A stretch of DNA of 64,000 nt from Hyalangium minutum (GCF_000737315.1 NZ_JMCB01000015.1:186001-250000), one strand, 5' to 3'. Positions 8,841 through 39,286 are shown, counted from the stretch's first letter. A program made the numbers and translations. Notes: generated by a model from the sequence alone, not told the origin.

Positions 8841-8886
8841 CGCACCTCAAAGTCATCCCGCGCGAGTGAGGCAGGGACCGCGCGGC

Positions 8887-10586: not shown

Positions 10587-11456
10587 ATGCTCCACCACCT
10601 GCGCTTCTTCGCTGAACGCAACCCGGCGGCTCACCGGGTGCACCAAGAGAGCTTCTGCGGCGTATGCCAGGGGCAGGGGCGCTTCTCCGGTGCCATGAGC
10701 TCCCTGGCCATCAACTACCTGCAGGCGTACTTCAACCTGATCGCCTGTGGCCTCGAGGGGGTCCCCGCGCAGAAGAAGGCTTGCCTCACCGAGCCGTGGT
10801 CGCGCGTGGGTGTCCGTCGGGCCTCGCCCCGGGCGGAGAGCTTCCTGGCGGCGGTAAACCTGTTGCTCCTCGGCTCGTGGCTTCGCCTCCAGAAGGAGCG
10901 GGGGGATCGCCGGGCCTCGGTCGGTCTGTTCATGCTGCGCTCGGGGTTGCGCAAGTCCGAGGAGGAGGTGCGTGGCGCCGGCCTGGAGCCCGAGCGCTTC
11001 CAGGGGCTGCCGCTGGCGGATCCGCTCTCCGACGGTCTGCCGGAGGTGTTCGCGGAGGTCATGGTCCGGCTCGCGGAGCTGTGCGGCCGGCCCGAGCAGG
11101 CGGAGCAGATGGCCGGGATGGGACGCGCGTTGGCTCGGGGCCTGGTGCTCTGGCACGTGTCGGTGCCTCCCAGCCCGGACAATCCCGACTGGTTTCCCGA
11201 GCTGCGTCAGCAACTGGCCCAGGATCCCGAGGGCCTGCGCCAGAGGCTGGAGAGCCAGCTGGCCGAGCTGCGCACGCACCTGGAGGCCCTGCCCCTGGGC
11301 GACTCGCAGGAGGCTGCGCTGGCGGTGGTGGACTCCATGAAGGAGGGAGAGCGGGTCCAGCAGCCGTTGAGAGGCGATCCGTTCGAGGCCTACAAGCGGC
11401 GCTGGGTGCAGTCTGGGGACCCCTGCGAGCTCCCCGGTGGCATCATTCGCCGCTGA
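10587..11456 (+). CDS. Hypothetical protein, DUF5685-like
   Basis: SFCGVCQGQGRFSGAMSSLAINYLQAYF resembles the YCGLC..LG..YG...RL.LNYD..F N-terminus of DUF5685 proteins. Assignment is from recalled consensus only. Confidence 0.5.
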   Translation: MLHHLRFFAERNPAAHRVHQESFCGVCQGQGRFSGAMSSLAINYLQAYFNLIACGLEGVPAQKKACLTEPWSRVGVRRASPRAESFLAAVNLLLLGSWLRLQKERGDRRASVGLFMLRSGLRKSEEEVRGAGLEPERFQGLPLADPLSDGLPEVFAEVMVRLAELCGRPEQAEQMAGMGRALARGLVLWHVSVPPSPDNPDWFPELRQQLAQDPEGLRQRLESQLAELRTHLEALPLGDSQEAALAVVDSMKEGERVQQPLRGDPFEAYKRRWVQSGDPCELPGGIIRR

Positions 11457-13770
11457 CATCCTGGGGGGCCGGGCCCAGCCGAGGCTTGAACGTCATCAGC
11501 AGCACCGGGCTCAGGAACGCATCCGCGAGGCCCGCGGCCCACAGGGTGAGCCCCGTGAGCAGCCCCAGGTTGGCGAGGCCCTCGAAGCGGGAGAACTGCA
11601 GCAGCAGGAAGCCTCCCGCCACCGCCGCCGACGTGACGATCATCGCCCGGCCGCACTCGTGGAGCGTCTCCAGCGCGGCCTTTCGGTGGGGCTCGGAGGC
11701 GCCCTCGGCTCGCAGCGCCAGGAAGCGCCGCTTGTAGCGGACGAGGTACTGCAGCGTGTCGTCATCGGCGATCACCAGGGCCATGCTCGCGATGAGCACC
11801 GTGGAGGGCTTGAGGTGGATCCCCAGCACGGCCATGGCTCCGAAGAGCACGCCCACCGGCAGCACGTTGGGCACCAGCCCGATCAGCGCCAGCTTCGCGC
11901 TGCGCAGCACCAGGAAGAACGCGAGGAAGCTCACCCCCAGCGCCGCCGCGAAGCTCTGCAGCAGCCCCCGCGTCAGCATGCCCGTCACGTGTGCCGTCAT
12001 CGCCACGTTGCCCGTGACGCTCGCGCGGTAGCCTGGCGGCACCTCCTTCGTCACGAAGGCCTGGGCGGACTCCACCACCTCCTGCATCCGCGCCGCGCCG
12101 AGGTTGGGCAGCAGCGCCACCACGCCCGCGGCCCGCCGGTTCTCCGCCAGCACCGTGTCCAGCGGCTGGTAGCGCGCCAGCTTGCCCACGGCGGTCGCGT
12201 TGGCCTCCTCGGTCTCCACCAGCAGGCCGTCGCCCCAGAGCGCCGCGTTCACCGGCGCCAGCATGCGCGGCAGGCTCACCACGGGCGGATGCTCGGGGAT
12301 GGCCGCCAGGAAGGCGTCCACCTTGCTCTGGAAGGCCATCGCTTCGGGCTCCAGCACCGAGTGTGACGCGCTGCCCTCCGGCTCCAGGAAGATGGCCAGC
12401 GGCACCAGTCCGCCCAGCGCCTCCTGCGCGTAGGTCAGCTCCGCCGCCAGCGGCGAGTCCGCGCGCAGGTCATCGAACACCCGGAACTCCCGCTGCAGCC
12501 GCGTGAGCGACAGCACGCTCAGCAAGGCCACGGCTCCGGCCACGGCCAGCACACGGCGCGGGTGTGTCACGGTCTGCCGCTCCACCCACCGCAGCATCGC
12601 GTCCAGAGGCCTCGTGCGCGCCTCGGAGGACTGCGGTCGGGCGCTCACCGTGGCCTTGTTCGGGCGCAGCAGCAGCATCCACGGCAGCATCAGCATGTTC
12701 GCCACCCATGCGAGCACCACCCCCAGCGCCGTAGCGAGCCCGAACTCGTAGACCGCCGTGAGGCCGATGAGCCCCATCGACACGAAGCCCGCGGCGATGA
12801 CCAGCTCGGTGGCCAGGCACGGTCCCGCTGCCGAGGCCATCGTCTCGATGAGTGCCTGCCGGTACTCCGTCCCCGAGCGGCGGCGCTCCTCCAGATCCGA
12901 CAGCACGTGCACGGTGTCCGTCAGCGACACCACCAGCACCACGATGGGCGAGAACGAGGTGAGGATGCCCAGCGGCACCTGCAGCCACCCCATGGCGCCC
13001 ACCATCCACACCCACGAGGCCACCAGCGTGCCCGCCGAGGCCACCACCGCCCAGGCATCCCGGTACGCGAAGGCCACCAGCCCGAGGATGACCAGCAGCG
13101 CCAGGGGCAGCAGCCGGCCCATGTCCTCCTCGATCATCCGCGCCAGCGTGGCCCGCACCGCCGGAGCCCCTGTCAGCGTCAGGTGTAGCTCAGGGCTCGC
13201 ATGCCGCTCGAGCACAGCCTGGGCCGCGGAGGTGAAGTCGCGCTCGGAGATGAGGCGCTCGGCGCCGCTGCCGGGAACGAGTGCCACCTGCACCACGGCC
13301 AGCTCGCGTGTGGGGTGCACGAGCATCCGCATGAGCGGATCCTGGCGCGCCTCCTCCAGCGCCTTCTTCAGGAGGTCGGGGCTGGCCCGGGACTCCACGG
13401 GAAAGAGCAGATCATCGGTCTTCCGTACGGAAGCCGGTCCCACCACGTGCCGGACGCGCGGCAGGGCGCGCAGGGCGTCCTCCAACTGGGCCAGGGTGGA
13501 CAGGCCCTCCGGAGTGAAGACACGCGGGCCCTCGGCGATGACGAACGCCTGCGTGTCCTCGCCCGGGAAGGTGCTCCGGTAGCGATCGAAGTCCGCCTTG
13601 GCTGCGTCCCCGAACGGGTGCATCCGCTCGATGGAAGGATCCATCGGCACACGGGCCCCGCCCACGAGGGCCAGCGCCCACAGTCCCATGAGTCCCAGTA
13701 CCAGGGGCCATCGGCGCGTCAGCAGGCGCTCGAAGACCGCCCGCCAGCTCACTGCCGCTGCCCTCTCCAC
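11443..13770 (-). CDS. MMPL/RND family transporter
   Basis: Two periplasmic loops and two TM bundles; LTDTVH and ADDDTLQY motifs typical of MMPL/HpnN-like proteins. Confidence 0.9.
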   Translation of the reverse strand: MERAAAVSWRAVFERLLTRRWPLVLGLMGLWALALVGGARVPMDPSIERMHPFGDAAKADFDRYRSTFPGEDTQAFVIAEGPRVFTPEGLSTLAQLEDALRALPRVRHVVGPASVRKTDDLLFPVESRASPDLLKKALEEARQDPLMRMLVHPTRELAVVQVALVPGSGAERLISERDFTSAAQAVLERHASPELHLTLTGAPAVRATLARMIEEDMGRLLPLALLVILGLVAFAYRDAWAVVASAGTLVASWVWMVGAMGWLQVPLGILTSFSPIVVLVVSLTDTVHVLSDLEERRRSGTEYRQALIETMASAAGPCLATELVIAAGFVSMGLIGLTAVYEFGLATALGVVLAWVANMLMLPWMLLLRPNKATVSARPQSSEARTRPLDAMLRWVERQTVTHPRRVLAVAGAVALLSVLSLTRLQREFRVFDDLRADSPLAAELTYAQEALGGLVPLAIFLEPEGSASHSVLEPEAMAFQSKVDAFLAAIPEHPPVVSLPRMLAPVNAALWGDGLLVETEEANATAVGKLARYQPLDTVLAENRRAAGVVALLPNLGAARMQEVVESAQAFVTKEVPPGYRASVTGNVAMTAHVTGMLTRGLLQSFAAALGVSFLAFFLVLRSAKLALIGLVPNVLPVGVLFGAMAVLGIHLKPSTVLIASMALVIADDDTLQYLVRYKRRFLALRAEGASEPHRKAALETLHECGRAMIVTSAAVAGGFLLLQFSRFEGLANLGLLTGLTLWAAGLADAFLSPVLLMTFKPRLGPAPQDVSGE

Positions 13771-14528
13771 CGGCTGAGGAAGTGCAGCATCTCCGCGCGG
13801 AAGCCGAACGGCTCCGTGGAGCCAGGAGGCAGGCCCAGCGCAGCAGGGGAGTCATCGGGCCGAGGCCAGGAGGCCGTGCCGAAGAGGACGTCGAACACCG
13901 TCAGCATGGAGCCATAGTTGCCTCGGCCCTGCGAGTGGTGGTGGAGCCGATGGTACGCAGGGCTCACCACAATCCAGTCCAGCCACCCCAGCGAGTACCC
14001 CATGTCCGAGTGGTGGTACGTGAGGAGCACCGCGTACAGCGCGAAGTACAGCTGCATGGACAGCGGCGAGAATCCCAACACCGTCAAGAGCGCGGTCAGC
14101 AGGGTCCCCGAGATGGCGACCTCCAGCCCGTGCGTGTGCGAGACCATCCACACGCTGAAGTGCTCCTCGCGGTGGTGCTGGAAGTGGAACACCCAGAGGG
14201 AGGCGAAGCGGTGCTTCACATAGTGGCTGATCCAGCTCACCAGCTCGGCCACCAGCGTGCAGGCCAGGAAGTCCACGGCGAACGGCAGCGTGTCAGGGAC
14301 TATCAGCGTGGGCAGGTGGGCGCGGGACCACACACCCGCGGACTGCAGGAAGTACATCGGCACGAGGCTCGCCACGAAGAACGTCCAGTTTCGCCGGCGG
14401 CGGGGGCCCGGTCCAAAGGTGTCCGCGCGGAACCGCGGATTGCGGAGCTCCAGCAGCACCAGGCCCACCAAGGCCAGGGCCGTGGCGACATGAAACATTG
14501 CGGCATCCATCGGGATGCAGCCTCTCAC
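13749..14528 (-). CDS. Sterol desaturase / fatty acid hydroxylase family protein
   Basis: His boxes HYVKH, HFQHH and HRLHH plus GNYG..LTVFDVLFGT. The start may be at 14507. Confidence 0.9.
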   Translation of the reverse strand: MRGCIPMDAAMFHVATALALVGLVLLELRNPRFRADTFGPGPRRRRNWTFFVASLVPMYFLQSAGVWSRAHLPTLIVPDTLPFAVDFLACTLVAELVSWISHYVKHRFASLWVFHFQHHREEHFSVWMVSHTHGLEVAISGTLLTALLTVLGFSPLSMQLYFALYAVLLTYHHSDMGYSLGWLDWIVVSPAYHRLHHHSQGRGNYGSMLTVFDVLFGTASWPRPDDSPAALGLPPGSTEPFGFRAEMLHFLSRWRGQRQ

Positions 14529-14561
14529 GACCCAGGGCTCTTCTCCCAGCCCCCCTCCTAC

Positions 14562-17500
14562 CTATGCCCGGCTGGCAGTGCTCGGGCGGAGGCCCGCCCT
14601 GGCAGGACCGCCAGGAAGGGGCTTGGAAGAACCGTGGCGACCCTTGGGCGGAACCTCGTCAGGGCAGCCGTCTTCGTCCTTGAAGCCGTTGCGGGTCTCC
14701 GGCTCGGTCGGGCACCTGTCCACTGCGTCCCGCACGCCGTCATTGTCGTTGTCCGGGTCGGGGCAGCCGTCCTCATCCTGGAAGCCGTCCTTGTCCTCGG
14801 GGAACTGCGGGCAGCGGTCCTGGTCGTCCGTGATCCCATCGCCGTCTAGGTCTACCCGCCGCGGGCGGGGCAGCTCGTCCGGGCAGCCATCCGTGTCTTC
14901 GAACTCGTTCAGCGTCTCCGGCTGGTTCGGGCAGTGATCGGTGGCATCCAGGATGCCGTCACCGTCGGTGTCGGCGTTCGGATCGACAGGACGGGCGCCG
15001 CTCTGGAAGCCCCAGTCTTTCAGGAAGCCGCCCCTGTCCTCGGGCTCCTGCGGATACTCTTCCGAGGACGGCCGGGACTTGCTGCGAGCAGAGGCCGCCT
15101 CCGCCTTCTCGGTCCACATGATTGCCGCCAGCAGGCGGAAGCCCGGCGTGCCATAGCCCCGGGTGAGGCCCATGCCGCTGCCCAGGTGCGCCGCCAGCGA
15201 GTCCGTGAAGCGGTACTTCAAGGCCGCCAGGAGCTCCAGCGGGCGTTCCTCGAGGTCCCACTCATTCAGGCCTCGGGCGCCCACCAGCGTGGCCTCGGCG
15301 GCCAGCCGGTGCGGGCCCACGAGGAAGGGCACCTCGGTACCGAGGCCGTAGGCGAACTCGTTGCTGACATTCAAGTTGTAGAACTGCGCCCGGGGCTGGA
15401 CGTTGATGCCCAGGTGGACCAGCACGCGCGCGCCGTTGACATGGGTCCACTCTCCGAGCAGCCGCGGGAAGAACGCCACGCCGCGGCGGCCCATGAACCC
15501 CTTGCCGCCCGAGGTGGGCAGCAGCACCGGCACCGTCACTCCGAGCTGCAGCCCGTTGTCGAAGGAGCGAAGGTGCGCCTTCGGCACGAGGCGCAGGTCC
15601 CCCATGCCTTCGGCATGGATTCCGTCGCCGAGCACAGGCGCCACGGAGAATGCGGGCGCGGAGTTCTGGGTGGTGAAGGGCACCACCATGCCGAGCTCGA
15701 ACTGGTCGTACAGCGACACGGCGCCCATTAGGTCGACGGTGGTCTGGTGCTTGACGATCTCGTAGATGAACTCGCCCGTCAGGGGCTGGCGGAAGTTGAA
15801 CGGGTCCCTCGCGTAGCTGAAGGACAGTCCCAGGTTCCAGTCGAGGTGCCGGCCCACTTGTGGGCTCTGCACCCCGAGCACATCCTTCCCACCCGGGCCG
15901 GGCTTGAACTGCTGCACGTCGATGCCCTGCGACGCCTGATCCGCGTTCTGCGCGCGGGCGGGCGCCGAGACCAGCAGGGCGGCGAGCAGACCCAGCACGC
16001 TCCAGTGCTTCTCCGAGCCGCGGAGGGCCTGACGGCGGCGCAAGAGCGTCAGGGCGAGCAACAGCGCCAGGGGCAACAGCGTGCTGGTGCCCGTGGAGGC
16101 GCAGCCACGGCCTCCCGTGGCCAAATCGTCCGCGTAGTTGAGCGGGTTGCGCCCGGCGTTGACCTCGTCCCCGTCGCTCATGCCTCCGCCGTCCGTGTCC
16201 CATTTGCCCGGGTCTGTTCCGCGCCGCAGTTCCTCGTCATCGGTCAGACCGTCGCCGTCGGAGTCCCCTGGGCCCACCGTCACCGTTACCGTGACGGGCG
16301 TGGAGTCCTCGGTGCCATCGGAGACCGTGTACGTGAACGTCACGGTGCCCTCGAAGTCCGGAGCCGGGGTGAACACGACGTGGGTGCGGTCGGTGCTGAT
16401 GGAGACGGTGCCGCTGGTGGGCTGGGTCACCTTGGAGACGGTGAGCGTCTCGCCGCTGTCCGGTTCACTGGAGTCATTGGTCAGCACACGCAGCAGGGAC
16501 GCCCTGTTGCCAGGGACCGTGAACGTGTCATCCCTGCCCGTGGGCGGGTCGTTCACCGGAGTGACCTTCACGGTGACCACGGCCTCGGCGGTCTCGCCGT
16601 CCTTGTCCTTCACCCGGTACTTATAGGTGGTCGTCCCGTTGAAGTTGGGAGAGGGCGTGAAAATGACCGCGTGGTCCGCGTTCACCGCCGCCGCGCCGTT
16701 GGGGGACGGCGTGACGATGTCGATGGTCAGCGGCGTGTCCCGGAGCCCCTGGTCATTGATCAGCACCTCCATCCTGACCGCCGTGTCCTCTGGGGTTGTT
16801 GCGGTGTCGGGAGAGGCGCTGGGGGTGCCCGCGAGGTCCAGCCGACTCGCCTCCGGGGCGGCATCGGCCAGGTTGCTGGGAATGCCCGCGGAGCAGCCGA
16901 AGTCCGCGTTGAGCGAGTAGTTCCGAGCGTTGGTGCCGCCCCAGACGACGATGTTGGCGGCGGTGCTGATCTGCGCGACCTTCAGCGCCGTCTTCGGGAG
17001 GACCAGGGTCACCCAGTAGTCCGCATTGCCGTTGAAGTTGCTGCCGTCGGTGGTGATCTTGACGTTGTAGTAGTCCGAGGCGGGCGTGAAGTCCTGGAGC
17101 ATGTCGGCCGCCTCTTCGCCCGCCGGATCACTGGGGTTGCCGGGCTCCTTGCGGCTGTTGCGCACCCAGCGGACCTTGGTGCCGCCCAGGTTGCCGTCGG
17201 CCGTGAGCATGTACTCGTAGGCCTGCGGATTGTTGTCCTGGTCCACCAGCACGTCCCAGCTCGAGGGCAGGAGGTCCACGCCGTTCTGCGCCCGCGGGTC
17301 GCCGTCGATGCGCAGCCGGAAGAACACGTGGTCCGTATCGGCGGCCCGGAAGAAGGCGGGGTAGGTGGTGTCTCCCACCAGGTCTCGCTCCGGGGTGCTC
17401 GGGACGGCATCGCCGGGGACATCGAACGCGTTGACGCCCCCGCAGCGATACGGGGAGAAGGCCGAGTCAGGGGGGATGGAGATCACCGCCTGCCGCGCGA

Positions 17501-17639
17501 TTCCCAGGGCCGAGGCGCTCTCGATGGAGGGACCCTCCGAGCATGCGGCCACTATCGCTACCAGCAACCCCACCCCGGCACGGGAGAGACGTCTCCGTGC
17601 GGAGCAGGCCGAGGGACTCGCGCTTCGGGAGGGGCTCAT
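14562..17639 (-). CDS. Large surface protein: lipoprotein signal, cadherin-like/Ig repeats, internal MYXO-CTERM-like segment, outer-membrane beta-barrel, TSP3 repeats
   Basis: Lipobox VAAC; two DTATTPED/VNDPPTGRDDTF Ig-like repeats; GGRGCASTG-hydrophobic-RRR segment; barrel region (GIDVQQFKP...GDLRLVPK); DxDGDGI.D..D.CP repeats. Confidence 0.8.
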   Translation of the reverse strand: MSPSRSASPSACSARRRLSRAGVGLLVAIVAACSEGPSIESASALGIARQAVISIPPDSAFSPYRCGGVNAFDVPGDAVPSTPERDLVGDTTYPAFFRAADTDHVFFRLRIDGDPRAQNGVDLLPSSWDVLVDQDNNPQAYEYMLTADGNLGGTKVRWVRNSRKEPGNPSDPAGEEAADMLQDFTPASDYYNVKITTDGSNFNGNADYWVTLVLPKTALKVAQISTAANIVVWGGTNARNYSLNADFGCSAGIPSNLADAAPEASRLDLAGTPSASPDTATTPEDTAVRMEVLINDQGLRDTPLTIDIVTPSPNGAAAVNADHAVIFTPSPNFNGTTTYKYRVKDKDGETAEAVVTVKVTPVNDPPTGRDDTFTVPGNRASLLRVLTNDSSEPDSGETLTVSKVTQPTSGTVSISTDRTHVVFTPAPDFEGTVTFTYTVSDGTEDSTPVTVTVTVGPGDSDGDGLTDDEELRRGTDPGKWDTDGGGMSDGDEVNAGRNPLNYADDLATGGRGCASTGTSTLLPLALLLALTLLRRRQALRGSEKHWSVLGLLAALLVSAPARAQNADQASQGIDVQQFKPGPGGKDVLGVQSPQVGRHLDWNLGLSFSYARDPFNFRQPLTGEFIYEIVKHQTTVDLMGAVSLYDQFELGMVVPFTTQNSAPAFSVAPVLGDGIHAEGMGDLRLVPKAHLRSFDNGLQLGVTVPVLLPTSGGKGFMGRRGVAFFPRLLGEWTHVNGARVLVHLGINVQPRAQFYNLNVSNEFAYGLGTEVPFLVGPHRLAAEATLVGARGLNEWDLEERPLELLAALKYRFTDSLAAHLGSGMGLTRGYGTPGFRLLAAIMWTEKAEAASARSKSRPSSEEYPQEPEDRGGFLKDWGFQSGARPVDPNADTDGDGILDATDHCPNQPETLNEFEDTDGCPDELPRPRRVDLDGDGITDDQDRCPQFPEDKDGFQDEDGCPDPDNDNDGVRDAVDRCPTEPETRNGFKDEDGCPDEVPPKGRHGSSKPLPGGPARAGLRPSTASRA

Positions 17640-17766
17640 GGGTGGAGTGAGGACGAAGTGGTGGGGTGTGCTTGCAGGTGGGTGCAGCCCGTGAGTGCTC
17701 GAACGGAGAGTTCAGCAGCAATGCCGCGGCTGCACCAGCAGGGAGCCGTCCGGTTCCCGCAAGAAA

Positions 17767-23045: not shown

Positions 23046-23209
23046 CTCCGCGCTGTTCACTGGAGCGCAGTCGACGGGGCGCGTCAGGGCCGTGAGAGCG
23101 GCTCGGCGCGCCCTTGCCGCGCCTGGGGGCTTTCCGGGCGTACGGGCGCTCGGCGTGGGCCGCACTTTTTGTGGGCCGGACCGGGACCTTCCTGTATCTG
23201 GTGGCAGTC

Positions 23210-25390
23210 ATGACGAGACTGCTGCTGCCCGCATGGATGCTGCTCGCCGCGTGCGCGGGCCCCGCTGCCTCCACCTCCGCCGTGGCCACGGCGGTCCCGT
23301 CCCAGGAGGGAACTCACCGTATGAAGTACCCCGCGACGCGCGCGGAGCCCATCGTGGACACGCTGCATGGCGTTCAGGTGGCCGACCCGTACCGCTGGCT
23401 GGAGGATGAGAAGGCCTCCGATGTTCAGGGATGGATGAAGGCCCAGGATCAGCTCACGCGCGAGTGGCTTGCGAAGGTGCCCGTCCGGGATGCGCTCGCG
23501 AAGCGCTTCCGCGAGCTGTTCTACCAGGAGTCCATCTTCCCCCCCGTGCGCTGCGGCAACCGCTACTTCTACTTCCGCACGCACAAGGACAAGGAGAAGG
23601 CCATCCTCTACTGGCGCGAGGGCGAAGCCGGCGCCGAGAAGGTGCTGCTGGACCCGAACGGCTGGAGCCAGGACGGCTCGGTGTCCCTGGGCTTCGCGGT
23701 GCCCTCGTGGGATGGGCGCAAGCTGGCCTTCGCGCAGAAGCCCAACGCCGCCGACGAGTCCATTCTCCACGTGCTGGATGTGGACTCCGGGCAGTGGTCC
23801 CAGGTCGACGTCATCCCGGGCACCAAGTACGCCGAGCCCAAGTGGATGCCGGACGGCAAGGGCTTCTATTACGAGTGGCTGCCGGTGGATGACAGCATCC
23901 CGGTGGATCAGCGGCCCGGCTACACGGAGATCCGCTTCCACGTGCTGGGCACGGACCCGAAGAAGGACGCGCTGGTGCACCCGCGCACGGGCGACCCGTC
24001 CACGTTCCTCTCCAAGGACCTCAGCCGGGATGGGAAGTACCTCTTCCTCATCGTCAGCCGGGGCTGGAGCGAGAACGACATCTACTGGAAGCGGGTGGGG
24101 GAGAAGGACTTCCGCCTGCTGGTGAAGGGCACCGGCGCCAAGTACGGCGTGCAGGCGTGGAAGGATCAGTTCTACATCACCACGGACGAGGGGGCGCCGC
24201 GGCAGCGCGTCTTCCGCGTGTCCCCCGAGAAGACCGAGCGGGCGGCCTGGCAGGAGATCATCCCCGAGGATCCGGTGGCTTCGCTGGAGAGCGCGGCCAT
24301 TGTGGGCGGGCACTTCGCGCTGGGGTACCTGAGGGACGCGACCAGCGAGCTCCGCATCGCCACGCTCGACGGCAAGCCGGTGCGCACCGTGGCGCTGCCC
24401 ACCGTGGGCGCGGCCACCAACCTGGTGGGCCTGGAGGATCAGGACGAGGCCTTCTTCCTCTTCAGCTCCTTCACCACGCCCCGGCAGGTCTACAAGACGT
24501 CCATCGCCTCCGGGAAGGTGGAGCTGTGGGCCCGGGTGGAGGTGCCCGTCGACACGGAGCAGTACACGGTGCGGCAGACCTTCTTCCCGTCCAAGGACGG
24601 CACGAAGATCCCCATGTTCCTCGTGCACCGGAAGGATCTGAAGCCGGACGGGCAGCGGCCCACGCTGCTGTACGGGTACGGCGGCTTCAACGTGAGCATG
24701 CAGCCGAGCTTCCGCTCCAGCATCTTCCCGTGGCTGGACGCGGGCGGGGTGTACGCCGTAGTCAACCTCCGCGGCGGCGGCGAGTACGGCAAGGCCTGGC
24801 ACGAGGCTGGCCGCCTGGAGCGCAAGCAGAACGTCTTCGACGACTTCCACGCCGCGGCGGAGTACCTCGTGCGCGAGCACTACACGCGCCCGGACCGCCT
24901 GGCCATCTACGGCGGCAGCAACGGCGGCCTGTTGGTGGGTGCGGCGATGACTCAGCGGCCGGAGCTCTACGGTGCGGTGGTCTGCGCGGTGCCGCTGTTG
25001 GACATGGTGCGATACCACCAGTTCGGCAGCGGCCGGACGTGGATCCCCGAGTACGGCACGGCGGATAAGCCCTCGGACTTCCAGGTACTTTACGCCTACT
25101 CGCCCTACCACCACCTCAAGACGGGGGTGCGCTACCCACCGCTGCTGATGATGTCGGCGGACCATGATGACCGGGTGGACCCGATGCATGCGCGCAAGTT
25201 CGTGGCGGCGTTACAGAACCTGGAGGGGGTGGGCGCTCCGGCGCTGCTGCGCATCGAGGCGAACGCGGGCCACAGCGGCGCAGACCAGGTGGCCAAGACC
25301 ATCGAGTCCAATGCGGATCTGTACGCGTTCCTCTTCGAGACCTTTGGCATGACGGGACCAGCCGGTGGAGCGACGGCTCAGGCCCGCTGA
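23210..25390 (+). CDS. Prolyl oligopeptidase (S9A), lipoprotein
   Basis: Start MTRLLL at 23210 with lipobox LAAC; ADPYRWLE, GGSNGG (catalytic Ser), DDRV (Asp), GHSG (His). Confidence 0.95.
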   Translation: MTRLLLPAWMLLAACAGPAASTSAVATAVPSQEGTHRMKYPATRAEPIVDTLHGVQVADPYRWLEDEKASDVQGWMKAQDQLTREWLAKVPVRDALAKRFRELFYQESIFPPVRCGNRYFYFRTHKDKEKAILYWREGEAGAEKVLLDPNGWSQDGSVSLGFAVPSWDGRKLAFAQKPNAADESILHVLDVDSGQWSQVDVIPGTKYAEPKWMPDGKGFYYEWLPVDDSIPVDQRPGYTEIRFHVLGTDPKKDALVHPRTGDPSTFLSKDLSRDGKYLFLIVSRGWSENDIYWKRVGEKDFRLLVKGTGAKYGVQAWKDQFYITTDEGAPRQRVFRVSPEKTERAAWQEIIPEDPVASLESAAIVGGHFALGYLRDATSELRIATLDGKPVRTVALPTVGAATNLVGLEDQDEAFFLFSSFTTPRQVYKTSIASGKVELWARVEVPVDTEQYTVRQTFFPSKDGTKIPMFLVHRKDLKPDGQRPTLLYGYGGFNVSMQPSFRSSIFPWLDAGGVYAVVNLRGGGEYGKAWHEAGRLERKQNVFDDFHAAAEYLVREHYTRPDRLAIYGGSNGGLLVGAAMTQRPELYGAVVCAVPLLDMVRYHQFGSGRTWIPEYGTADKPSDFQVLYAYSPYHHLKTGVRYPPLLMMSADHDDRVDPMHARKFVAALQNLEGVGAPALLRIEANAGHSGADQVAKTIESNADLYAFLFETFGMTGPAGGATAQAR

Positions 25391-32057: not shown

Positions 32058-32863
32058 GCCGAATGCCCGTCCGCGCCTGGGTAGGGCTGACCCTCTTGAT
32101 CGGGCTCGGTGCGCTGAGCCTGCTCGCGGGCCGCGTCTTCCCCGAGGTCCTGGCGAGCACTTGCCCGCTCGGTCATGACCCGACACACCCGGATCGCACC
32201 GTTTGTGAGCTGGCCTTTGGAGGCCTCTGGGTCTCGCTCGCCATCGGGCTCGCGGCAGGGGCACTGTCCACCGGCATGGGCCTGTTCGTGGCCGCCGTGG
32301 CCCGGTTGTCTGGCGGAGCTCTGGAGCGCTGGGTGATGCGCCTGGCCGATGCCTTCTTCGCGCTCCCGGACGTGCTCGTGGTGATGGTGCTCCAGCTCGC
32401 GGGCCAATCGCTCGTGGATGCCGGGGCTGGCGCGGGACTGGGCCCCTTCGGCCTCATGGTGGTGTCGCTGGCGCTCGTGGGTTGGGCCGGGCCCGCGCGC
32501 ATGTTCCGCAACCGCTTGGACACCCTCGAAGGCCAGGAGTTCATCGCCGCCTCCCGGGCGCTCGGAGGCACCGGGCCGCACGTGCTCCGCGTCCACCTGT
32601 GGCCCTCGCTGCGCCCCTTCGTCCTCGCAGTCTTCCTCAGTCGGCTTCCCGCGGCCATTCTCGCGGAGTCCACCGTGAGCTTCTTCGGTATCGCCCGCAT
32701 GGAGCCCATGTCCCTGGGCCGCTACCTGGGCACCAGCTACGCCGCGCTCATCTACGAGGGTGGCTCTCGCGTCGTCATCCCCGCGTGGCTCCTGCTGGTG
32801 CTGCTCGTGCTGGGCGCCTCGCTGGCCTCCCAGGCGCTGGCGGCTCGCACGCGGCGGGCTTGA
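32054..32863 (+). CDS. ABC transporter permease (OppC-like)
   Basis: EFIAASRALGG...VLRVHLWP EAA loop; ILAESTVSF. Confidence 0.9.
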   Translation: MSRMPVRAWVGLTLLIGLGALSLLAGRVFPEVLASTCPLGHDPTHPDRTVCELAFGGLWVSLAIGLAAGALSTGMGLFVAAVARLSGGALERWVMRLADAFFALPDVLVVMVLQLAGQSLVDAGAGAGLGPFGLMVVSLALVGWAGPARMFRNRLDTLEGQEFIAASRALGGTGPHVLRVHLWPSLRPFVLAVFLSRLPAAILAESTVSFFGIARMEPMSLGRYLGTSYAALIYEGGSRVVIPAWLLLVLLVLGASLASQALAARTRRA

Positions 32864-32890
32864 ACCCTTCGAGCCACGCCCTGGGAGACT

Positions 32891-33100
32891 TCAGTCCTCT
32901 TCCTGGCTCACGCCCCATTCCCTCAGCTTCTTGAAGAGGGTGGAGCGGCCGAGCCCCAGCTCCTTGGCGGCGCGGTCCTTGTGGTAGTGGCAGCGGCGCA
33001 GGGTGCTCTCGACGAGCTGGCGCTCCAACTGGTGCAGCATCTGCTCCAGGGTAACGCCCTTCGGCAGCTCGAGCGGCGGGGTGTCCGGAACAGGCGTCAT
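32891..33100 (-). CDS. Small Fis-type helix-turn-helix protein
   Basis: LERQLVESTLRRC...KDRAAKELGLGRSTLFKKLREWG (HTH_8 pattern); ATG at 33100. Confidence 0.7.
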   Translation of the reverse strand: MTPVPDTPPLELPKGVTLEQMLHQLERQLVESTLRRCHYHKDRAAKELGLGRSTLFKKLREWGVSQEED

Positions 33101-33455
33101 GGACAGGGGGCAGAAGGGCCCCACATCGTTCTCCGGGATTGATACGCCCGGCGTCCGCTACGACAACTTGGCGAGCTTTGCGAGTTCACTTGCACGAAGC
33201 TGCTCTTGTTCCAGTTCCAGTCTGAGCAGCGCCTGCTGACGCACGGGCTGTGCGCCGGGCCGGAGCAGAGTCCTCGCAATGCTCGCCGCCCCGCGGCCCG
33301 ACGGCCCAACCGTGTTGATCGGCAGAGTGGTCGACTTTCGAGCAAAAGCGTCCCGCCGCGCCGATCCAAGCGTGCCTCGGCGATACGACGACGACTGCGA
33401 CGGCGAGATCCACGAGACGACTGACTGCCCCTGCACGCTCGACGGCATTGTCCCG

Positions 33456-36089
33456 CTAGAAATCGCCGAGCAACCTGTCGCCATCTCGCACGAGACGGTC
33501 GAAGAAGATGCCTATTCCGGCCGAGCCGGTGCCCAAATCCGTGGAGATTCGTACCAGCTCCTCACCGGGGAAGACGATGCCGTGCTCCTTTTCGATGGCA
33601 AAGAGCATGATGCGCTCTGCAAAGCGATGCGCCTCCTCGCGGTAGTGCACTTCGCCTGTGTGCTGGTGCATGTCGATAAAGAAGTCCCCAAGCCCCGCCA
33701 TGCCGGCAAACCTTCCCGGGAAGGCGCTGTATTTCCCGTACAGGTGGCGCGCGATCTTCCTCGCTGCCGCCAGGTCGCGGGGCTCGCCTAGGACCCTGTG
33801 GAAGTCCAGCAAGACGCAGCCGATTCCTGCGCTCCCGATGTGCGAGTAAGGTGAGACGACGTTCTCGTCGCGCGAGCGCTGCCAGATGAGAGAGTCATCC
33901 GCACCCCGGGCGTGCGCCATCTCGAAATCAAGCAAGCCCCTGGCAAGCTCGAGGTGCTCCGGCTCCCCCGTGCACTGGTAGAGCTTCAAGAAAAACTGGG
34001 CGATGCCTGCCGCCCCGTGCGCATAGCCATGATACGTGATCCCGTCGGAACTGGGGTAGCAATAGCCATCTCCTGTCTTCTGCAGCCCCGCCTTGAGGCG
34101 AGAGGACAGCGCTGCCGCCTGGTCCAGGTACTCCTCACGCTTCGTCACATGAAAGAACCACAGGTTGGCCAGTCCAACGCCTGCGGTGCCATAAAACACA
34201 TCCAGGTTATCGTGGAGGATCGGCGAGGCGTTGGCCATCGCCATCAAGGCCTTCGCCCTCTCCTTGAGACCGATCTCGTGAAATGCCAGGGCGATCCCGG
34301 CCAGCCCTATATGGAGCCCCGGTGGATAATCGCGAATGCCGGCCGTCTCGGAGAGTTCGAGGAGTCCGCCGCGCACGGAGGGTGGCAGATCTCCTTTTAC
34401 GCGGTGTAGGAACAACGCGATGCCGGCGACGCCATAAGAGATATTCAAGTCGTTCGTGATGAACCGACGGTAATCAGTCGGAGGGTCGAGCCGCCGCGGC
34501 TTCTCCAGCGCCCATACCGCATATTCTGCAATCTTCTCGACCGCCGCCGACAACTCATGCGCTTTGGCCGCGGGCGGGAGCGGCTCCGGCGGCCTCACAG
34601 CGGCGATGCTCCGTCGGGCGCTCTCGAGCAGCGCGTCGGCGCTCGACGGGCTTTCGCCGATATCCAGCGCCAGCGCGAGGACCTCGCCAGGAATGCCCTT
34701 CTCCCGTGCAATGCGAGAGTACAGGCGCCGTCGCGACTGCGGGTTGATCGTGAAAAACGACGTGACGGGGAAGATGAGGTCGCACAAGACGCCGCTCAGC
34801 GCTTGGTAGTCCTCTTCCACGGTGGGTTTTTCGCCCCGGAGCGCCGACGGCCCGCCGAAACCCGGCGTCTGAAGCGGAACGATCAGGCCGTCCTGACCTC
34901 CGGCGGTGCAGTGAGCGCTCTCGAAGTCGACGAAAGAAACGGTCCGCGTCGTCGGGTCGAGGAGGATGTTTTGCGGCGCGAGGTCGTGAACGACGACGCC
35001 GAGGTCATGTATCTTTCGGAGTGCATCCGTGAGGTTTCTGGCAATGTCGACGAACCGGGTGCAATAGTCGATGACATCCTGCCACGAGGGGTTGCTTATC
35101 AGCGCCAGGGGGGAGTCGCTGGACGCTCGGTAGGAAATCAGGGACCTCTTCCCCTGGATCCTCTCCATGACAATGAAGCTGTGCTCCCACTCCTCGAAGA
35201 AGTCGTATGGCCTGGGGGTCAGGCCGGTGTCCTCCAGGATCTTTAGGACGCGATACTCGTTCGCCAGGCAGGCCACGGCGTCGTGGGGGCTAGCGGCGGT
35301 CCGGTTGATGAAGCGCCTCCCTTCCTTGACGACTAGCTCCGCCCCGGTTTCGAGATCGACCGCCAGATAGACTCCGCCCTTGCTGGACTGCGCGAGGACA
35401 CCGGTGATCCGATATCGTCCCTTCAGGACGACCTCGCTTGGCTCGGGCTCTGGATCGTCGGGGAACGGATCGGCCACGCCATTCGGAAGGAAGAAGAATG
35501 GTTGGCGCTGGTCCGATACACAGGAGCCATCGGCCCCCTGGATATGGTAAACCCGCTCGCCGAAGATATCGACCCTCCCCTGGGCCTTGAAGGCCCCGTA
35601 TCGATAGAAGAGAACCTTGCTGCCCCGGTACCGTTTGTCGGAGAGGATATAGGGCCCTGCGAATCCCGCCGTGACGGCGTGCAGGCGCTCCATCATGCGC
35701 ACGAAGTGCCGGACGTCGGACGGGTAGATCGTGATGAATTTTCCACAAGAGCTCCCGGGGCAGTCGCTGGAACTCATGTAACCCAGCATTTGCTCGTCCA
35801 CGAGAAACTTGAAGGGAACTCTCTCCTCCGTCAGGATCGGAAGGATGGTCCGCAGGATCGTCGGCGCGTGCTCATGGATTGCGGAGATGTGGATCTTGAA
35901 CCCTTGCGCCGGAATGACACCGCCTTCGGGGGCCGCGCCGCACCATACCCCCGGCTCGTCGCTGAGCGTCCAGCCCGTCGGCAAGAGCAGACTCACGAGA
36001 CCCCGATAATCGCTCTGCGTCGAACGGTACCGGTCGAGGCTCTCGTAGCGTTCCGGGTCAACGATGATGAAGCCGGTGAACTCACGCAT
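33456..36089 (-). CDS. lanKC: Class III lanthionine synthetase LanKC
   Basis: Start MREFTGF at 36089. Lyase motifs QGFKIHISA, GKFITIYP, GPYILSDKRY, YRYGAF; kinase motifs GGVYLA, VVKEGR, HDLAPQNIL, DFE; LanC-like domain GYAHGAAG, PYSHIGSAG, PGRFAGMAG with no Zn-ligand Cys motifs. Confidence 0.92.
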   Translation of the reverse strand: MREFTGFIIVDPERYESLDRYRSTQSDYRGLVSLLLPTGWTLSDEPGVWCGAAPEGGVIPAQGFKIHISAIHEHAPTILRTILPILTEERVPFKFLVDEQMLGYMSSSDCPGSSCGKFITIYPSDVRHFVRMMERLHAVTAGFAGPYILSDKRYRGSKVLFYRYGAFKAQGRVDIFGERVYHIQGADGSCVSDQRQPFFFLPNGVADPFPDDPEPEPSEVVLKGRYRITGVLAQSSKGGVYLAVDLETGAELVVKEGRRFINRTAASPHDAVACLANEYRVLKILEDTGLTPRPYDFFEEWEHSFIVMERIQGKRSLISYRASSDSPLALISNPSWQDVIDYCTRFVDIARNLTDALRKIHDLGVVVHDLAPQNILLDPTTRTVSFVDFESAHCTAGGQDGLIVPLQTPGFGGPSALRGEKPTVEEDYQALSGVLCDLIFPVTSFFTINPQSRRRLYSRIAREKGIPGEVLALALDIGESPSSADALLESARRSIAAVRPPEPLPPAAKAHELSAAVEKIAEYAVWALEKPRRLDPPTDYRRFITNDLNISYGVAGIALFLHRVKGDLPPSVRGGLLELSETAGIRDYPPGLHIGLAGIALAFHEIGLKERAKALMAMANASPILHDNLDVFYGTAGVGLANLWFFHVTKREEYLDQAAALSSRLKAGLQKTGDGYCYPSSDGITYHGYAHGAAGIAQFFLKLYQCTGEPEHLELARGLLDFEMAHARGADDSLIWQRSRDENVVSPYSHIGSAGIGCVLLDFHRVLGEPRDLAAARKIARHLYGKYSAFPGRFAGMAGLGDFFIDMHQHTGEVHYREEAHRFAERIMLFAIEKEHGIVFPGEELVRISTDLGTGSAGIGIFFDRLVRDGDRLLGDF

Positions 36090-36235
36090 TGCGCGTCTTT
36101 CGATACCCTGCACGTTGCCTCGCTTCTCCCTCGCTGTCACGAGCGTCGTAAAAATGGTTAATGCGAGGATGGAGGACGCAGTCGTCCTTTCCTGTCCGGG
36201 CGACGGTCCTCTGGCCTCAGTGAAGCGTTGGAGCG

Positions 36236-36346
36236 CTATCCCTGCCAGATGCAGCTGCGAAAGATGCTGACCCACGATGCGGTAGGACAGGTCCAGTCGG
36301 GCTTTGGTTTAAGGGCCAGCTTCTGGAGCGCGAGTACATTTTTCAT
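36236..36346 (-). CDS. Class III lanthipeptide precursor, 36 aa (MKNVLALQKLALKPKPDWTCPTASWVSIFRSCIWQG)
   Basis: GGAGGT RBS 4 nt before the ATG; VLALQKL leader motif; S-x2-S-x4-C core; stop 147 bp upstream of the lanKC start on the same strand. Below the ORF-track length cut-off. Confidence 0.88.
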   Translation of the reverse strand: MKNVLALQKLALKPKPDWTCPTASWVSIFRSCIWQG

Positions 36347-36793
36347 TATGACCTCCCATTTAGGCGATTGCAGAGTTGCTTGCAGGAGCTCCGCGCGAGG
36401 TCAGCTCGTCGCTGAACCTTCGCGTCTCAATATACGCATACGCAGCGTCCCACCCACCACATCGTCGTGGGACAATCGTATGTTTTATGTCGTCTCACCT
36501 CCTTGCTGGACAATGTAATACGGTTGACTCAAGGCGCCATCCCCAGCTCGCTGCCTGCTCGGTTGACCCCAACGCAGTGGCCACCCCAGAGCGCATGGTG
36601 TTGAGCCCCAAGCATCCATAGTGACCTGGAAGCCCACCCCTGCGGCCTGGCGCCTGGCTGGGCCGCTTGGGCCTGCGTGTGGTCCCCCTTGGGGACGATC
36701 TGGTGAACCGTTTCGCCACAGAAAAGTTAGCCTGCCCTGCGGCAATCTAAGAGGTTGTGCGTCTGCTTTCCGTCCTGCGAGGTTGCGTGCGTG

Positions 36794-37713
36794 ATGCGTG
36801 CCTTCCTGCCCTGCCGGTCTGCTCTGCCCCTCGTCCTTGTGGCTTCCGTGGCCCTGGCAAAGGAGCCTGATGTAGTCGAGAGGATCATCAATCTGTCAGA
36901 GCACCCAGCAACGACCGCGAATAAGATCTATGCCGCTGGTCGCGTGGCGACAGTGCTGCGCTTTGAGAAGGAAGTCGATCCAGAGCAGACACGAATGCTC
37001 GGCTCGGAAGGGTGGTTTGAGCCCCTTTGGTAGGGGGTAGGAAGGTCGTCCTTGAACCGCTCCGGGACATCGAGCCTGGGGACCGCTTCATGCTTCTCGT
37101 CACTCTCAGGGACGGCATGGAGATCCCCTTCGTCGTCACGTCGGAACAGCAACCGCGCGACGGCAGGCGGGTGGCGGATCAACAGGTCACCGTGATTCGC
37201 AATCTTGAGTCGGCGAGCGCTGCTCAGGCTTCGCTTTACGAATCGCTCAAGAGAGAGCGGGAGCTTCGGGAGAAGGTCGAGCGCTACGAGCAAGAGGATT
37301 CCGTTGATCATGCACTCGCGGCGCTCCTCGCGAAAGACGTTACCCAGCAGACGCCTTTCCGTGAGCGTCGCAAGTGGCGCCTACAGGAAGGGGATGTTGA
37401 GTTCGTCGTCCGGCTCTTCTCAGGCAACGGGAAGGCAGCGGTCGTCTTCAAGATTACGAACCGCGAGGATGTGCCCTGGAAGATGCAGATGGCACGTCTC
37501 TACACAGCATCCGGCTGGAAGGACAGACCGTTTGCTTTGCGCACGGATCATGAAGCAATCATCCCAGGTACAGCCGGTTACGTCGCCGTCGTTGTTGATC
37601 AGAGCGCCTTTGAAGAGGGCACAGCGCTAAAGAATCTCCTTCTTGAGATCTACCGAGACGACGGGTACCGGCAGTTGTTCGTTCTGCTGGATCCGAGCCT
37701 TATCCGTCAGTAA
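36794..37713 (+). pseudogene. DUF2381 family gene with a frameshift near 37027-37030
   Basis: N-terminal part (signal peptide, VATVLRFEKEVDP, WFEPL) stops at TAG 37031-37033, while VGGRKVVLEPL continues in another frame. One missing T in CTTTGG would restore the frame. Confidence 0.75.
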
Positions 37714-37724
37714 GAGCGCCGGTC

Positions 37725-38225
37725 ATGTCCTCGCCTAAGGCGTTCCTGCTTCTCTGTCCCGCCCTAGTCAGCGCGTCCGTCGGATGCGCGACCACGACAA
37801 CCCCTGGTAACGTGCCGCTGCGATCGGACGGGAGCCCGGGACCGGAGGACTGCTCGGAGAAAGCGCTCGAGACGATGCGGATTCTGCGGATGCGCGTCGG
37901 TGACTCTGCGGACGTGGAACTCGACGCGAACCAGATCGACGCGAGGCCGATCACGCTCTATGACGGCCCTGTCGAGAGCTATTGGGATGGCGCACTCGGT
38001 ACTCTGCAAGCGGGTACCCGTCTTTACGGTCGAGTGTGGACAGGCGGTCCGCAGGTTGTCGTCCGGTGGTATCAGGCTCACCCGGTAGATGGGGAACCAG
38101 TTCCCATCTGTGCCGTCGCTCGCTTTGGAGGTAACGAGCTTAGAAAGAGGCCGGACTCGAAGCCCGGAACCGCCGTCCTCGGCTACTCCGGTGCCTCTGC
38201 CTTCGTCGTCAATTCGTTTCGCTGA
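37725..38225 (+). CDS. Myxobacterial lipoprotein of the type that accompanies DUF2381 genes
   Basis: Lipobox SVGC; GTRLYGRVWTGG.QVVVRWYQA...PVPICAVAR motif typical of DUF2381-linked ORFs. Confidence 0.7.
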   Translation: MSSPKAFLLLCPALVSASVGCATTTTPGNVPLRSDGSPGPEDCSEKALETMRILRMRVGDSADVELDANQIDARPITLYDGPVESYWDGALGTLQAGTRLYGRVWTGGPQVVVRWYQAHPVDGEPVPICAVARFGGNELRKRPDSKPGTAVLGYSGASAFVVNSFR

Positions 38226-38250
38226 GCCCCTCCTACGAATAACCAGGGAA

Positions 38251-38385
38251 CTCCGCCGAACAGCCACCGTACCCCGGTGAGGAGCGGCGTGAGTCCGGAG
38301 CTAACCAGTTAGCTCCGCCGAACAGCCACCGTGCCCCGGTGAGGAGCGGCGTGAGTCCGGAGCTAACCAGTTAGCTCCGCCGAAC
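38251..38385. repeat. 62-bp tandem repeat (about 2.2 copies) with an internal palindrome
   Basis: CTCCGCCGAAC starts at 38251, 38313 and 38375; the two full units differ at one base. GGAGCTAA-CCAG-TTAGCTCC hairpins at 38297-38316 and 38359-38378. Confidence 0.9.
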
Positions 38386-38842
38386 GGGGGGGAGGGGAGC
38401 GGCGCGACCTGCACAGCCCACGAACGTGGACTGGCGGAGGCGTGTGCGGTGAGAGCCTACGCCTGTTAATTCAGTGGGTTGGCGCGCTGCTGCTGTCCTC
38501 CCCTTGGCGCCTCTGCTTTGTAAGCCAGCGGTGCTCCAACACTTTTGGCGGAGGCGGTGGACGTGGAGCTGAACCACAAGGTGCTGGTGCGCAACGAGGA
38601 GGACAAGGCGGTGCTGGACTTCAAGGGCATCCCGCTGGAGCAGGTGCGAAGGGGGGCGCGGGGCCCTCGCGCCTGGCGCCTCGCTCGCCTTCCAGGCGCT
38701 TGCGGCCCACACGGGGCGTGCGTGAAAGCTTCGGTTCAAGCCCCCGGGATACCAAGGTTTTTCAAGCACCCTGCGAGGAATTCCCCCCGTGCGTGGGTGG
38801 GTTCCCTCAACGCACACCATTCTTGTCCTCGAGAGCCCAGCC

Positions 38843-39286
38843 ATGTCCCTCCCGACCGAAGAACTCTCCACGCAGGTCAGCCCCGAGCGGCGCAGCGATG
38901 ACTTGAAGGTCGAGCCGGTTCGCGGCGCGGTCCTCGTCGTCGAGGACGATCCTTCCAGCCGTGAGCTGCTGGTGGAACTGCTCACCCAGTGGGGCTACGA
39001 GCCGCTCCCCGTAGGCAGCGCCGAGGAGGCCGAGTTCGCCGTGCGCAACAAGCGCATGGACGCCGCCGTCGTGGATGTCTTTCTGCCCGGCCGCAGCGGC
39101 GCCACGCTCATGTCCCGCCTGCGCGAGCGCTTCCCTCAGGCCGTCCTCATCGGAGTGAGCGCCATGAGCGACGCGGCCATGGCCCGCAAGTGCAAGGGGC
39201 TCGGGGCGGACCTGTTCATCGGCAAGCCGGTGATGCCGGAGAAGCTGGCCAAGGCGCTCCAGTCCAAGCACACCAGCTGGCACTGA
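38843..39286 (+). CDS. Single-domain response regulator (receiver)
   Basis: [18 protein letters not shown] (phospho-Asp), FIGKP; ATG at 38843. Confidence 0.9.

Follow-up and report, generated by a model that had tools for sequence, protein, structure and literature searches.

A 64,000-nucleotide stretch of the Hyalangium minutum genome (GCF_000737315.1, NZ_JMCB01000015.1:186001-250000; here called the window) carries on its minus strand a short gene, lanA, followed by lanKC, and together these appear to form a minimal two-gene class III lanthipeptide cluster that is probably functional. This reading, which is drawn from sequence, is held at a probability of about 0.85. The gene pair is genuine but ordinary, with the standard architecture of a well-known class of peptides that are ribosomally synthesised and post-translationally modified (RiPPs). 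What is new is an enzyme of divergent lineage paired with a core peptide not catalogued before, on a small, mobile-looking islet.

Class III systems are recognised by a leader of the LxLQ type and by an Sx2Sx3C core motif, which gives rise to lanthionine (Lan) or labionin (Lab) (PMC7268733). In its broader form the motif is Sx2Sx2-5C, and the cyclase that acts on it is Zn-free; a Cys-Cys-His Zn site defines the cyclases of classes I, II and IV (PMC8341899). The leader helix follows a hydrophobic-x2-hydrophobic-x2-hydrophobic pattern (PMC11330476). At the sequence level the locus has all the features that define a class III system, but it falls outside the curated precursor subfamilies.

The precursor gene and its leader

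The open reading frame (ORF) of lanA starts at an ATG that is the first start codon after an in-frame stop in the ORF listing. On the minus strand, positions 36360-36340 read aatGGGAGGTcataATGAAA, with GGAGGT at 36356-36351 and the ATG at 36346-36344, and the start region in minus-strand reading is ...aaatGGGAGGTcataATGAAA... By direct count the peptide contains V4-L5-A6-L7-Q8-K9-L10, T19, C20, T22, S24, S27, S31 and C32, with Trp at 18, 25 and 34. The leader occupies approximately residues 1-17, where V4/L7/L10 give the helical pattern and L7-Q8 the LxLQ-type ending, and the core runs from about residue 17 or 18 to residue 36, with K-P-K-P-D at the presumed junction. There are only two Cys in the whole peptide and one canonical Ser/Ser/Cys motif, S24-W-V-S27-I-F-R-S-C32, which is S-x2-S-x4-C (n=4) and lies within the Sx2Sx2-5C rule. 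The 36-residue ORF, its GGAGGT ribosome binding site (RBS) and the quoted residue positions had all been put forward in an initial annotation made from the DNA alone, and direct reading, the ORF listing and translation bear them out; the labionin-type core that it proposed is likewise inside the published range (PMC8341899).

The strongest evidence that so short an ORF is a gene comes from its position. Flanking DNA was searched at 80 loci with LanKC relatives, taken from bacterial assemblies at one genome per species. At 69 of the 80, at least one small ORF with the leader pattern M-x-x-[IV]-L-x-L-Q lies directly upstream of LanKC on the same strand, and this holds for all 13 myxobacterial loci. 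The C-terminal halves of these ORFs contain Ser/Ser/Cys motifs, and further leader-bearing precursors lie beside LanKC genes in metagenome contigs. The initial annotation had described the leader as of the LxLQ type, which these neighbours share, and had reasoned that a lack of conservation beside LanKC homologues would count against the ORF; as 69 of 80 loci carry such an ORF, it is conserved there.

A leader hidden Markov model (HMM) gave a similar result. The model was made from a 12-residue block of 124 distinct precursors that neighbour LanKC genes outside the window, and was run against the 1262 stop-to-stop segments of at least 20 residues in the six frames of the 64-kb window. Its sole match was the segment 36239-36400(-), which holds lanA (E=6.3e-5, 18.7 bits), the runner-up having E=3.8, and the regular expression M..[IV]L.LQ also occurs once in the window, at lanA. 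In lanA the first Ser of the motif lies 16 residues after the leader Gln; the median among 127 comparator peptides is 15. Spacing of x4 is a minority but normal variant (19/127), while three Trp put the peptide at the top of the range, a number matched by a single comparator.

A degenerate-DNA scan of metagenomes for MKNVLALQK found 36 stretches, only about eight of which are class III-like precursors, most of the others being chance matches or a 12-codon ORF, MKNVLALQKMNV. This ORF recurs in many low-GC contigs, some of them labelled as human gut metagenome (L081, L085-L087, L090, L091, L099, L102, L105-L107, L111, L113-L116). It was rejected as a class III precursor, and is unrelated to LanKC as far as was looked.

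The initial annotation had regarded the precursor as unannotated, and the collections agree. The exact peptide is absent from a collection of 15 billion proteins that does contain the LanKC of the same 251-kb contig; lanA has therefore never been called as a gene. This is typical of class III precursors, about 55% of which are unannotated in RefSeq (PMC7268733). Against the curated models, lanA scores 16.6 bits with NF038154 (cut-off 22), where only leader residues 1-14 are matched, and 12.7 bits with NF038159 (cut-off 30), and does not match NF038160 or NF033212; it is below the cut-off of every curated class III precursor family (NCBIfam lanthi_III_a/b/c and SapB_AmfS_lanti). It is a further case in which curated precursor models miss a divergent core although the leader can still be recognised. 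No real relative emerged when phmmer was run with the peptide on 1.84 billion representatives. One match, P0247 (E=9e-4), was rejected as an artefact; it is a 347-residue repeat protein whose DGTCSTVSW repeats add up in the score. A protein search by 5-residue words, with lanA padded to 40 residues, returned nothing, and is uninformative for proteins as short as this, because P0121 (MKNVLALQKLTSTT..., 40 residues), which is in the collection and shares six 5-mers with the padded query, was also missed.

The DNA around lanA offers some candidate signals. The spacer before lanKC folds into a GC-rich hairpin, a possible attenuator whose read-through would set the ratio of lanA to lanKC; its fold energy is no better than that of shuffled sequences (whole-region z=-0.20), and a terminator scan made no call in it. 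Similar spacers of ~140-160 nt are found at two related loci, L004 and L103. Some 100 nt upstream of the lanA start is a 7-bp perfect inverted repeat, GTCCCAC-N13-GTGGGAC (36447-36473, minus strand), which may be an operator or may have arisen by chance. Rfam gave no match in the part of the window from 30 to 41 kb.

The LanKC synthetase and related systems

The synthetase is listed as an ORF at 33456-36275(-), in which the start codon is most likely the GTG at 36113 (MQGIERRAMREF...), because the predicted N-terminus MQGIERRA... matches the MQGIDRRA and MLGIDRRA of its homologues; this choice of start is what places a 122-nt spacer after lanA. The protein has a lyase, a kinase and a LanC-like cyclase domain (Table 1). 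It scores 696.6 bits against NF038151, the NCBIfam LanKC model (cut-off 575), and 535.5 bits against NF038150, the class IV LanL model (cut-off 650), and so the class III assignment of the initial annotation stands. The lyase retains K65, H67, K94, K117, Y122, D151 and R163 (877-residue numbering) and the kinase K255/E256, H361, D369, N374 and D388-F-E390. More broadly, of the 93 columns in which at least 95% of 119 homologues agree, 91 are kept, among them lyase K65, H67, K94, K117, Y122 and R163 and kinase K255, D369, N374 and D388. The lyase residues Lys65, Lys94, Lys117, Tyr122 and Arg163 are the same, and bear the same numbers, as those of the phosphate pocket of TherKC (PMC13504147).

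The cyclase domain was also said to lack Zn-ligand cysteines, and the alignments concur. There is no invariant Cys anywhere in LanKC in an alignment of 17 sequences, and within the cyclase domain Cys stays below 30% of the 119 homologues in every column; the Cys-Cys-His Zn site of class I, II and IV cyclases is therefore absent. In a pairwise alignment to the structure 8car, which we take to be the class IV enzyme CuvL (an unconfirmed identity), its SFCQG and QCCG face YSHIG and RFAG of the window enzyme. Matches to the Zn-dependent LanCL1 and LanCL2 structures were short and probably out-of-register within the repeats, and because that alignment failed, the test of the Zn ligands rests on conservation together with 8car.

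The cyclase motifs that are present are G-Y-A-H691-G, P-Y-S-H750-I-G and F794-A795-G-M-A-G. The first belongs to a G-x-A-H-G signature of a mostly Gram-negative LanKC clade (alignment of P0001-P0120), in which the His is found in 111 of the 119 homologues; the clade's P-Y-W-R-x-G sits where Zn-dependent cyclases have their first ligand Cys. Four LanKC subclasses are recognised, III-a (ThurKC), III-b (PneKC), III-c (TherKC) and III-d (CurKC), and the III-a and III-c cyclases carry Asp residues in GLIDG and F-D motifs (PMC13504147). In pairwise alignments these Asp residues of ThurKC and TherKC, of which that of GLIDG is catalytic, fall opposite His691 and F794-Ala795 of the window enzyme, the clade His aligning with the Asp of ThurKC GVIDG and the F-D motif with F794-A795. 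The comparison suggests a cyclase active site unlike that of the structurally studied III-a and III-c enzymes.

ThurKC (III-a, 8sam/8sao) and TherKC (III-c) share full-length homology with the window enzyme, but their substrates have STxSNxC cores, unlike the lanA peptide. The top sequence matches in the PDB, all of them LanKC/LanL-type enzymes of full length, are 8car, ThurKC 8sao/8sam, 9wop, PneKC 8wgo and SalKC 9ugq. In phmmer the window enzyme scores 209 bits with ThurKC, 175 with 9wop/9wj0 (unnamed chains), 152 with PneKC and SalKC, and 69 with the kinase domain of CurKC (7wj6), the only part of that enzyme solved; CurKC is of subclass III-d (PMC13504147). The nearest proteins in a collection of 5.8 billion clusters, from Sorangium, Polyangium, Stigmatella and Cystobacter, are 49-51% identical, and a neighbour-joining tree places the window LanKC alone at the base of the myxobacterial clade.

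A route to the product can be inferred from established class III biochemistry (PMC8341899, PMC11330476, PMC13504147). The leader would dock on LanKC as an amphipathic helix (V4-x2-L7-x2-L10, with L7-Q8); the kinase would use a nucleoside triphosphate to phosphorylate up to five Ser/Thr of the core (T19, T22, S24, S27, S31), and the lyase would eliminate phosphate to leave dehydroalanine (Dha) or dehydrobutyrine (Dhb). The Zn-independent cyclase would then add the C32 thiol to Dha27, after which the enolate might attack Dha24 to form labionin, or be protonated to give lanthionine. A second thioether ring may also form between C20 and one of the dehydro residues left over. Which of labionin and lanthionine would form is not predictable, because identical motifs give either in known systems (PMC8341899).

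No protease or exporter is linked to lanA-lanKC, and peptidases encoded elsewhere would presumably trim the leader, as they do for most class III clusters of actinobacteria. In flavipeptin, the prolyl oligopeptidase FlaP cleaves after a Pro of the leader (PMC8341899), and the junction in the lanA peptide is likewise Pro-rich; speculatively, K-P-K-P-D would suit removal of the leader by such an oligopeptidase and then by an aminopeptidase. FlaP is encoded in its cluster, whereas the oligopeptidase in the window (family S9; 23114-25390, plus strand), which adjoins the lon gene, is 8 kb away, lies outside the islet and is not a cluster gene. It was rejected as the cluster protease, being syntenic with lon in relatives that have no lan genes, but could act on lanA in trans. 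As to the role of the product, the precedents are SapB-like surface-active or developmental peptides and antimicrobial peptides.

The best-known system of this layout is SapB/AmfS with RamC/AmfT, in which the lyase-kinase-cyclase order, the precursor directly upstream and the M-x-x-[IV]L-x-LQ leader are the same as in the window. SapB and the precursors of Sorangium, however, have two Ser/Ser/Cys motifs in their cores, while the lanA peptide has one. The precursors from Sorangium, which are long and contain a poly-Gly linker, pass NF033212 (37.7 bits), and NCBI names them 'SapB/AmfS family lanthipeptide'; the lanA peptide has no linker, has three Trp plus an additional Cys on the N-terminal side, and does not match that model. 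The curvopeptin (CurKC), erythreapeptin and stackepeptin systems, whose enzymes are actinobacterial, have Sx2Sx3C-type motifs and yield lanthionine or Lan/Lab mixtures (PMC8341899, PMC7268733). The motif alone does not predict labionin, because an identical one gives lanthionine in curvopeptin (PMC8341899).

The labyrinthopeptins (LabA1/A2, LabKC) share with the window system an Sx2Sx3-5C motif and a Zn-free cyclase (PMC8341899). They are the founding labionin peptides and are actinobacterial, with two labionins and a disulfide, whereas the lanA peptide has two Cys and one motif. Their cores are hydrophobic and Trp-containing, like that of lanA. No close sequence relationship between the lanA peptide and the labyrinthopeptins is shown.

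The islet and its setting

The lan genes probably arrived by horizontal transfer on an islet of 5.9 kb. Its GC content is 0.60-0.62, against 0.68-0.71 outside, and the GC content at third codon positions of lanKC is 0.78, against ~0.9 in neighbouring genes. In blastn comparisons, synteny with relatives breaks at 32841 and resumes at 38775. Two relatives have the order trigger factor-ClpP-ClpX-prolyl oligopeptidase-Lon-(...)-solute-binding protein-permease-permease-response regulator, continuing as DUF179-BolA-glutaredoxin-DUF2914-patatin; in these, the last permease and the response regulator are separated by 70-130 bp, compared with 5.9 kb in the window. The islet is absent from the related Myxococcaceae, namely Stigmatella hybrida and a related metagenome genome. 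The Lon protease of the window is 94-95% identical to Myxococcaceae Lon (Stigmatella hybrida, Corallococcus); the host is therefore a myxobacterium, as the initial annotation had supposed.

Table 1. Coordinates of the lan genes, their domains and the islet features within the window
Feature	Position	Strand	Description	Basis
lanA	36236..36346	-	36-residue class III lanthipeptide precursor MKNVLALQKLALKPKPDWTCPTASWVSIFRSCIWQG	ORF, leader HMM, homologous ORFs, NF038154 leader match
Shine-Dalgarno-like GGAGGT	36351..36356	-	4 nt before lanA ATG	direct reading
lanA-lanKC spacer	36114..36235	-	122 nt; GC-rich hairpin (~36172-36211), T-run further on	centroid fold
lanKC, class III lanthionine synthetase	33456..36113	-	885 residues from GTG 36113; 877 from ATG 36089	
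Phospho-Ser/Thr lyase domain, N-terminal	35439..35987	-	residues 43-225 (885-residue form)	Pfam RamC_N, E=1.5e-56
Ser/Thr kinase domain, central	34737..35390	-	residues 242-459	Pfam Pkinase, E=4.8e-11
LanC-like cyclase domain, C-terminal	33483..34265	-	residues 617-877	LANC_like, E=1.2e-24
Islet	32882..38665	.	~5.9 kb, lower GC; lanKC, lanA and unrelated cargo	GC, synteny break, direct repeat
Left direct-repeat copy	32804..32881	+	78 nt, imperfect; covers 3' end and stop codon of Opp-like permease gene	
Right direct-repeat copy	38666..38743	+	78% identical to left copy; followed by native intergenic region and response-regulator gene	
Fis-type helix-turn-helix (HTH_8) ORF	32891..33124	-	77 residues; just downstream of lanKC	
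DUF2381 gene	36755..37713	+	Myxococcus paralogous family; two overlapping frames	TIGR02268
Putative lipoprotein ORF	37725..38225	+	signal peptide ...LVSASVGC	
Tandem repeat	38240..38385		62-nt unit, ~2.4 copies, 94% identity	

Apart from the lan genes, the cargo of the islet does not occur beside LanKC at other loci, and the islet has no integrase, transposase, exporter, protease or immunity gene. The HTH_8 ORF, which is preceded in frame by a stop codon and by a featureless ORF of 108 codons (33158-33484), may be a regulator of small size or what is left of a larger activator. The DUF2381 gene is divided between the frames 36755-37033 (profile positions 1-68) and 37027-37713 (profile positions 70-283), with a frameshift near 37030, and is either a frameshift pseudogene or the result of a sequencing error. 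The junctions of the 62-nt repeat each form the palindrome CGGAGCTAACCAGTTAGCTCCG, which is found nowhere else in the window and is expected 0 times by chance. The ORFs at 33158-33484(-) and 38371-38985(-) were set aside as apparent wrong-frame artefacts, being Ser/Arg-rich and free of family matches or relatives. The Opp-like ATP-binding cassette genes beside lanKC were rejected as a cluster transporter; they are of the importer type, are conserved in relatives and lie outside the islet.

A second insertion, of ~11.7 kb relative to the related genome L122, occupies 6023-17764 and starts right after four tRNA genes (Pro, Arg, His, Arg; 5588-6021). Among its products are a cyclic nucleotide (cNMP)-binding protein, an MMPL transporter, a fatty-acid hydroxylase and a 1025-residue cadherin/Big_9 adhesin-like protein, and the insertion looks like a tRNA-adjacent genomic island.

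Alternative readings and ring topology

A number of observations weigh against a functional lanA-lanKC pair. The core lies outside the curated class III precursor families, and lanA has no close full-length relative that would show purifying selection. A scan for sigma-70-type promoters upstream of lanA found none, although such a scan covers myxobacterial promoters poorly. LanKC departs from near-universal columns at P259R and R762D and has P-Y-S-H-I-G where most relatives have P-Y-W-R-x-G. The neighbours within the islet look degraded, DUF2381 being split and the HTH_8 ORF preceded by an in-frame stop, and the islet may be decaying. Much of this would also be expected if the islet, once acquired horizontally, were decaying and the pair on it were an inactive relic, with ORFs still open but no peptide made or modified, and the missing exporter, protease and immunity gene would fit as well. 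A stop-free lanKC of 2.66 kb in a region of 62% GC, with 91 of 93 conserved positions intact, argues instead for selection, however, and in lanA the start codon and RBS are intact, as are the leader and ring motifs. Furthermore, a minimal lanA-lanKC pair without protease or transporter is the norm in myxobacterial relatives and in actinobacteria (PMC7268733). A relic is thus considered very unlikely.

Were the 36-codon ORF instead a chance frame, the true LanKC substrate would be encoded elsewhere. The ORF is indeed short, has escaped gene finders, scores below the NCBIfam precursor cut-offs and lacks a significant full-length relative. Yet its leader HMM match is unique in the window and falls exactly at the position held by precursors at 69 of 80 loci, the RBS is correctly placed, the Ser/Ser/Cys motif lies at a typical distance from the leader, and there is no second leader-like ORF in the 64 kb. 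An origin by chance is essentially excluded.

A further alternative accepts an active lanA-lanKC system and concerns the rings. Here the product would have a non-canonical topology, with two lanthionines or an interlocked pair in place of a single C-terminal labionin, and one ring would have reversed polarity, Cys20 attacking a dehydro residue that lies C-terminal to it. A retro-labionin would be another option, made by attack of Cys20 on Dha24 and then of the enolate on Dha27. This is a variant of the functional two-gene cluster rather than a contradiction of it. It draws on the cores closest to that of lanA, which are in three uncalled peptides, all below the NCBIfam cut-offs, with the pattern Cys-x(1-3)-Ser-hydrophobic-hydrophobic-Ser-[ILS]-[IF]. 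These are the precursor of Polyangium sp. 15x6 (L004), MNNVLALQKISVDRHDNPEMCFSVISSIIACVRPS, with the core ...EMCFSVISSIIACVRPS; that of Rubrivirga sp. IMCC45206 (L072), containing ...GCSPSFLSIIVTIRC...; and that of a soil metagenome contig, Ga0247823_10022149 (L103), MNNVLALQKLSVRQGTTVCISWFSLFMRNAHPPVNTGK, with the core ...TTVCISWFSLFMRNAHPPVNTGK. The last is without a C-terminal Cys, its sole Cys being the N-terminal one, and is encoded 158 nt upstream of an intact LanKC, P0039. The Polyangium and soil peptides have the same M-[KN]-N-V-L-A-L-Q-K leader as lanA, and Rubrivirga the variant M-Q-N-V-L-D-L-Q-A. The cores, by contrast, cannot be aligned with that of lanA beyond the Cys-Ser-Ser motif, the Rubrivirga spacing being x6, and the three LanKCs are 33-50% identical to the window enzyme.

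That an N-terminal Cys recurs in three related precursors lends some support to a second ring through C20. For the reversed topology in particular, a Cys stands one to three residues before S-hydrophobic-hydrophobic-S in all three, the L103 peptide has no C-terminal Cys at all, and the orphan first cysteines of further precursors (CWSTC, CGQSNVSC, CSNSSVSC) are spread over several phyla. In the alignment to 8car, moreover, the clade His falls at the position of the proton-donating His of class I, II and IV cyclases, and it has been speculated that labionin formation becomes possible through the lack of this His (PMC8341899). On the other hand, in all characterised class III rings the Cys is C-terminal to the Ser pair (PMC8341899), and the lanA peptide does carry the canonical S24-x2-S27-x4-C32. 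The L103 peptide could come from a dead gene or from an error in sequencing, conservation is too much to claim from four peptides, and the LanKCs beside the lanA and Rubrivirga peptides are not close relatives of the other enzymes. A non-canonical topology is therefore rated as unlikely, if less so than decay of the locus. Doubtful to a greater degree is the joint proposal that the lanA, Polyangium, Rubrivirga and L103 peptides form a precursor type with the N-terminal Cys as ring nucleophile; equally doubtful are its product, a reversed-polarity lanthionine or retro-labionin, and its enzyme, a LanKC clade that lacks both the Zn ligands and the ThurKC/TherKC Asp and has a conserved His.

Orphan first cysteines ahead of the first Ser-x2-Ser (MCWSTCSSSNC, CGQSNVSC, ACSNSSVSC) were seen beside other LanKC genes at loci L028, L036, L062, L064, L073, L076 and L092, in several phyla and mostly outside the myxobacteria. 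They are apparently a recurring, unstudied feature of class III precursors.

To a specialist, a functional lanA-lanKC cluster of this kind would be a reasonable target for expression and no surprise. Myxobacterial lanthipeptides have been described as barely explored (PMC11876861), and no characterised myxobacterial class III lanthipeptide appeared among the papers searched. The islet is a small, clean example of how a RiPP cluster is moved horizontally into a block of conserved housekeeping genes. How class III enzymes choose between labionin and lanthionine, and how a Zn-free cyclase activates Cys, are open questions (PMC8341899); the lanA peptide bears on them. The clade has different putative cyclase residues, and the core holds two competing cysteines. 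With two genes in ~2.9 kb and a short precursor, the cluster should be easy to express in a heterologous host, and its expression would give a first look at the products of a large, mostly Gram-negative LanKC clade.

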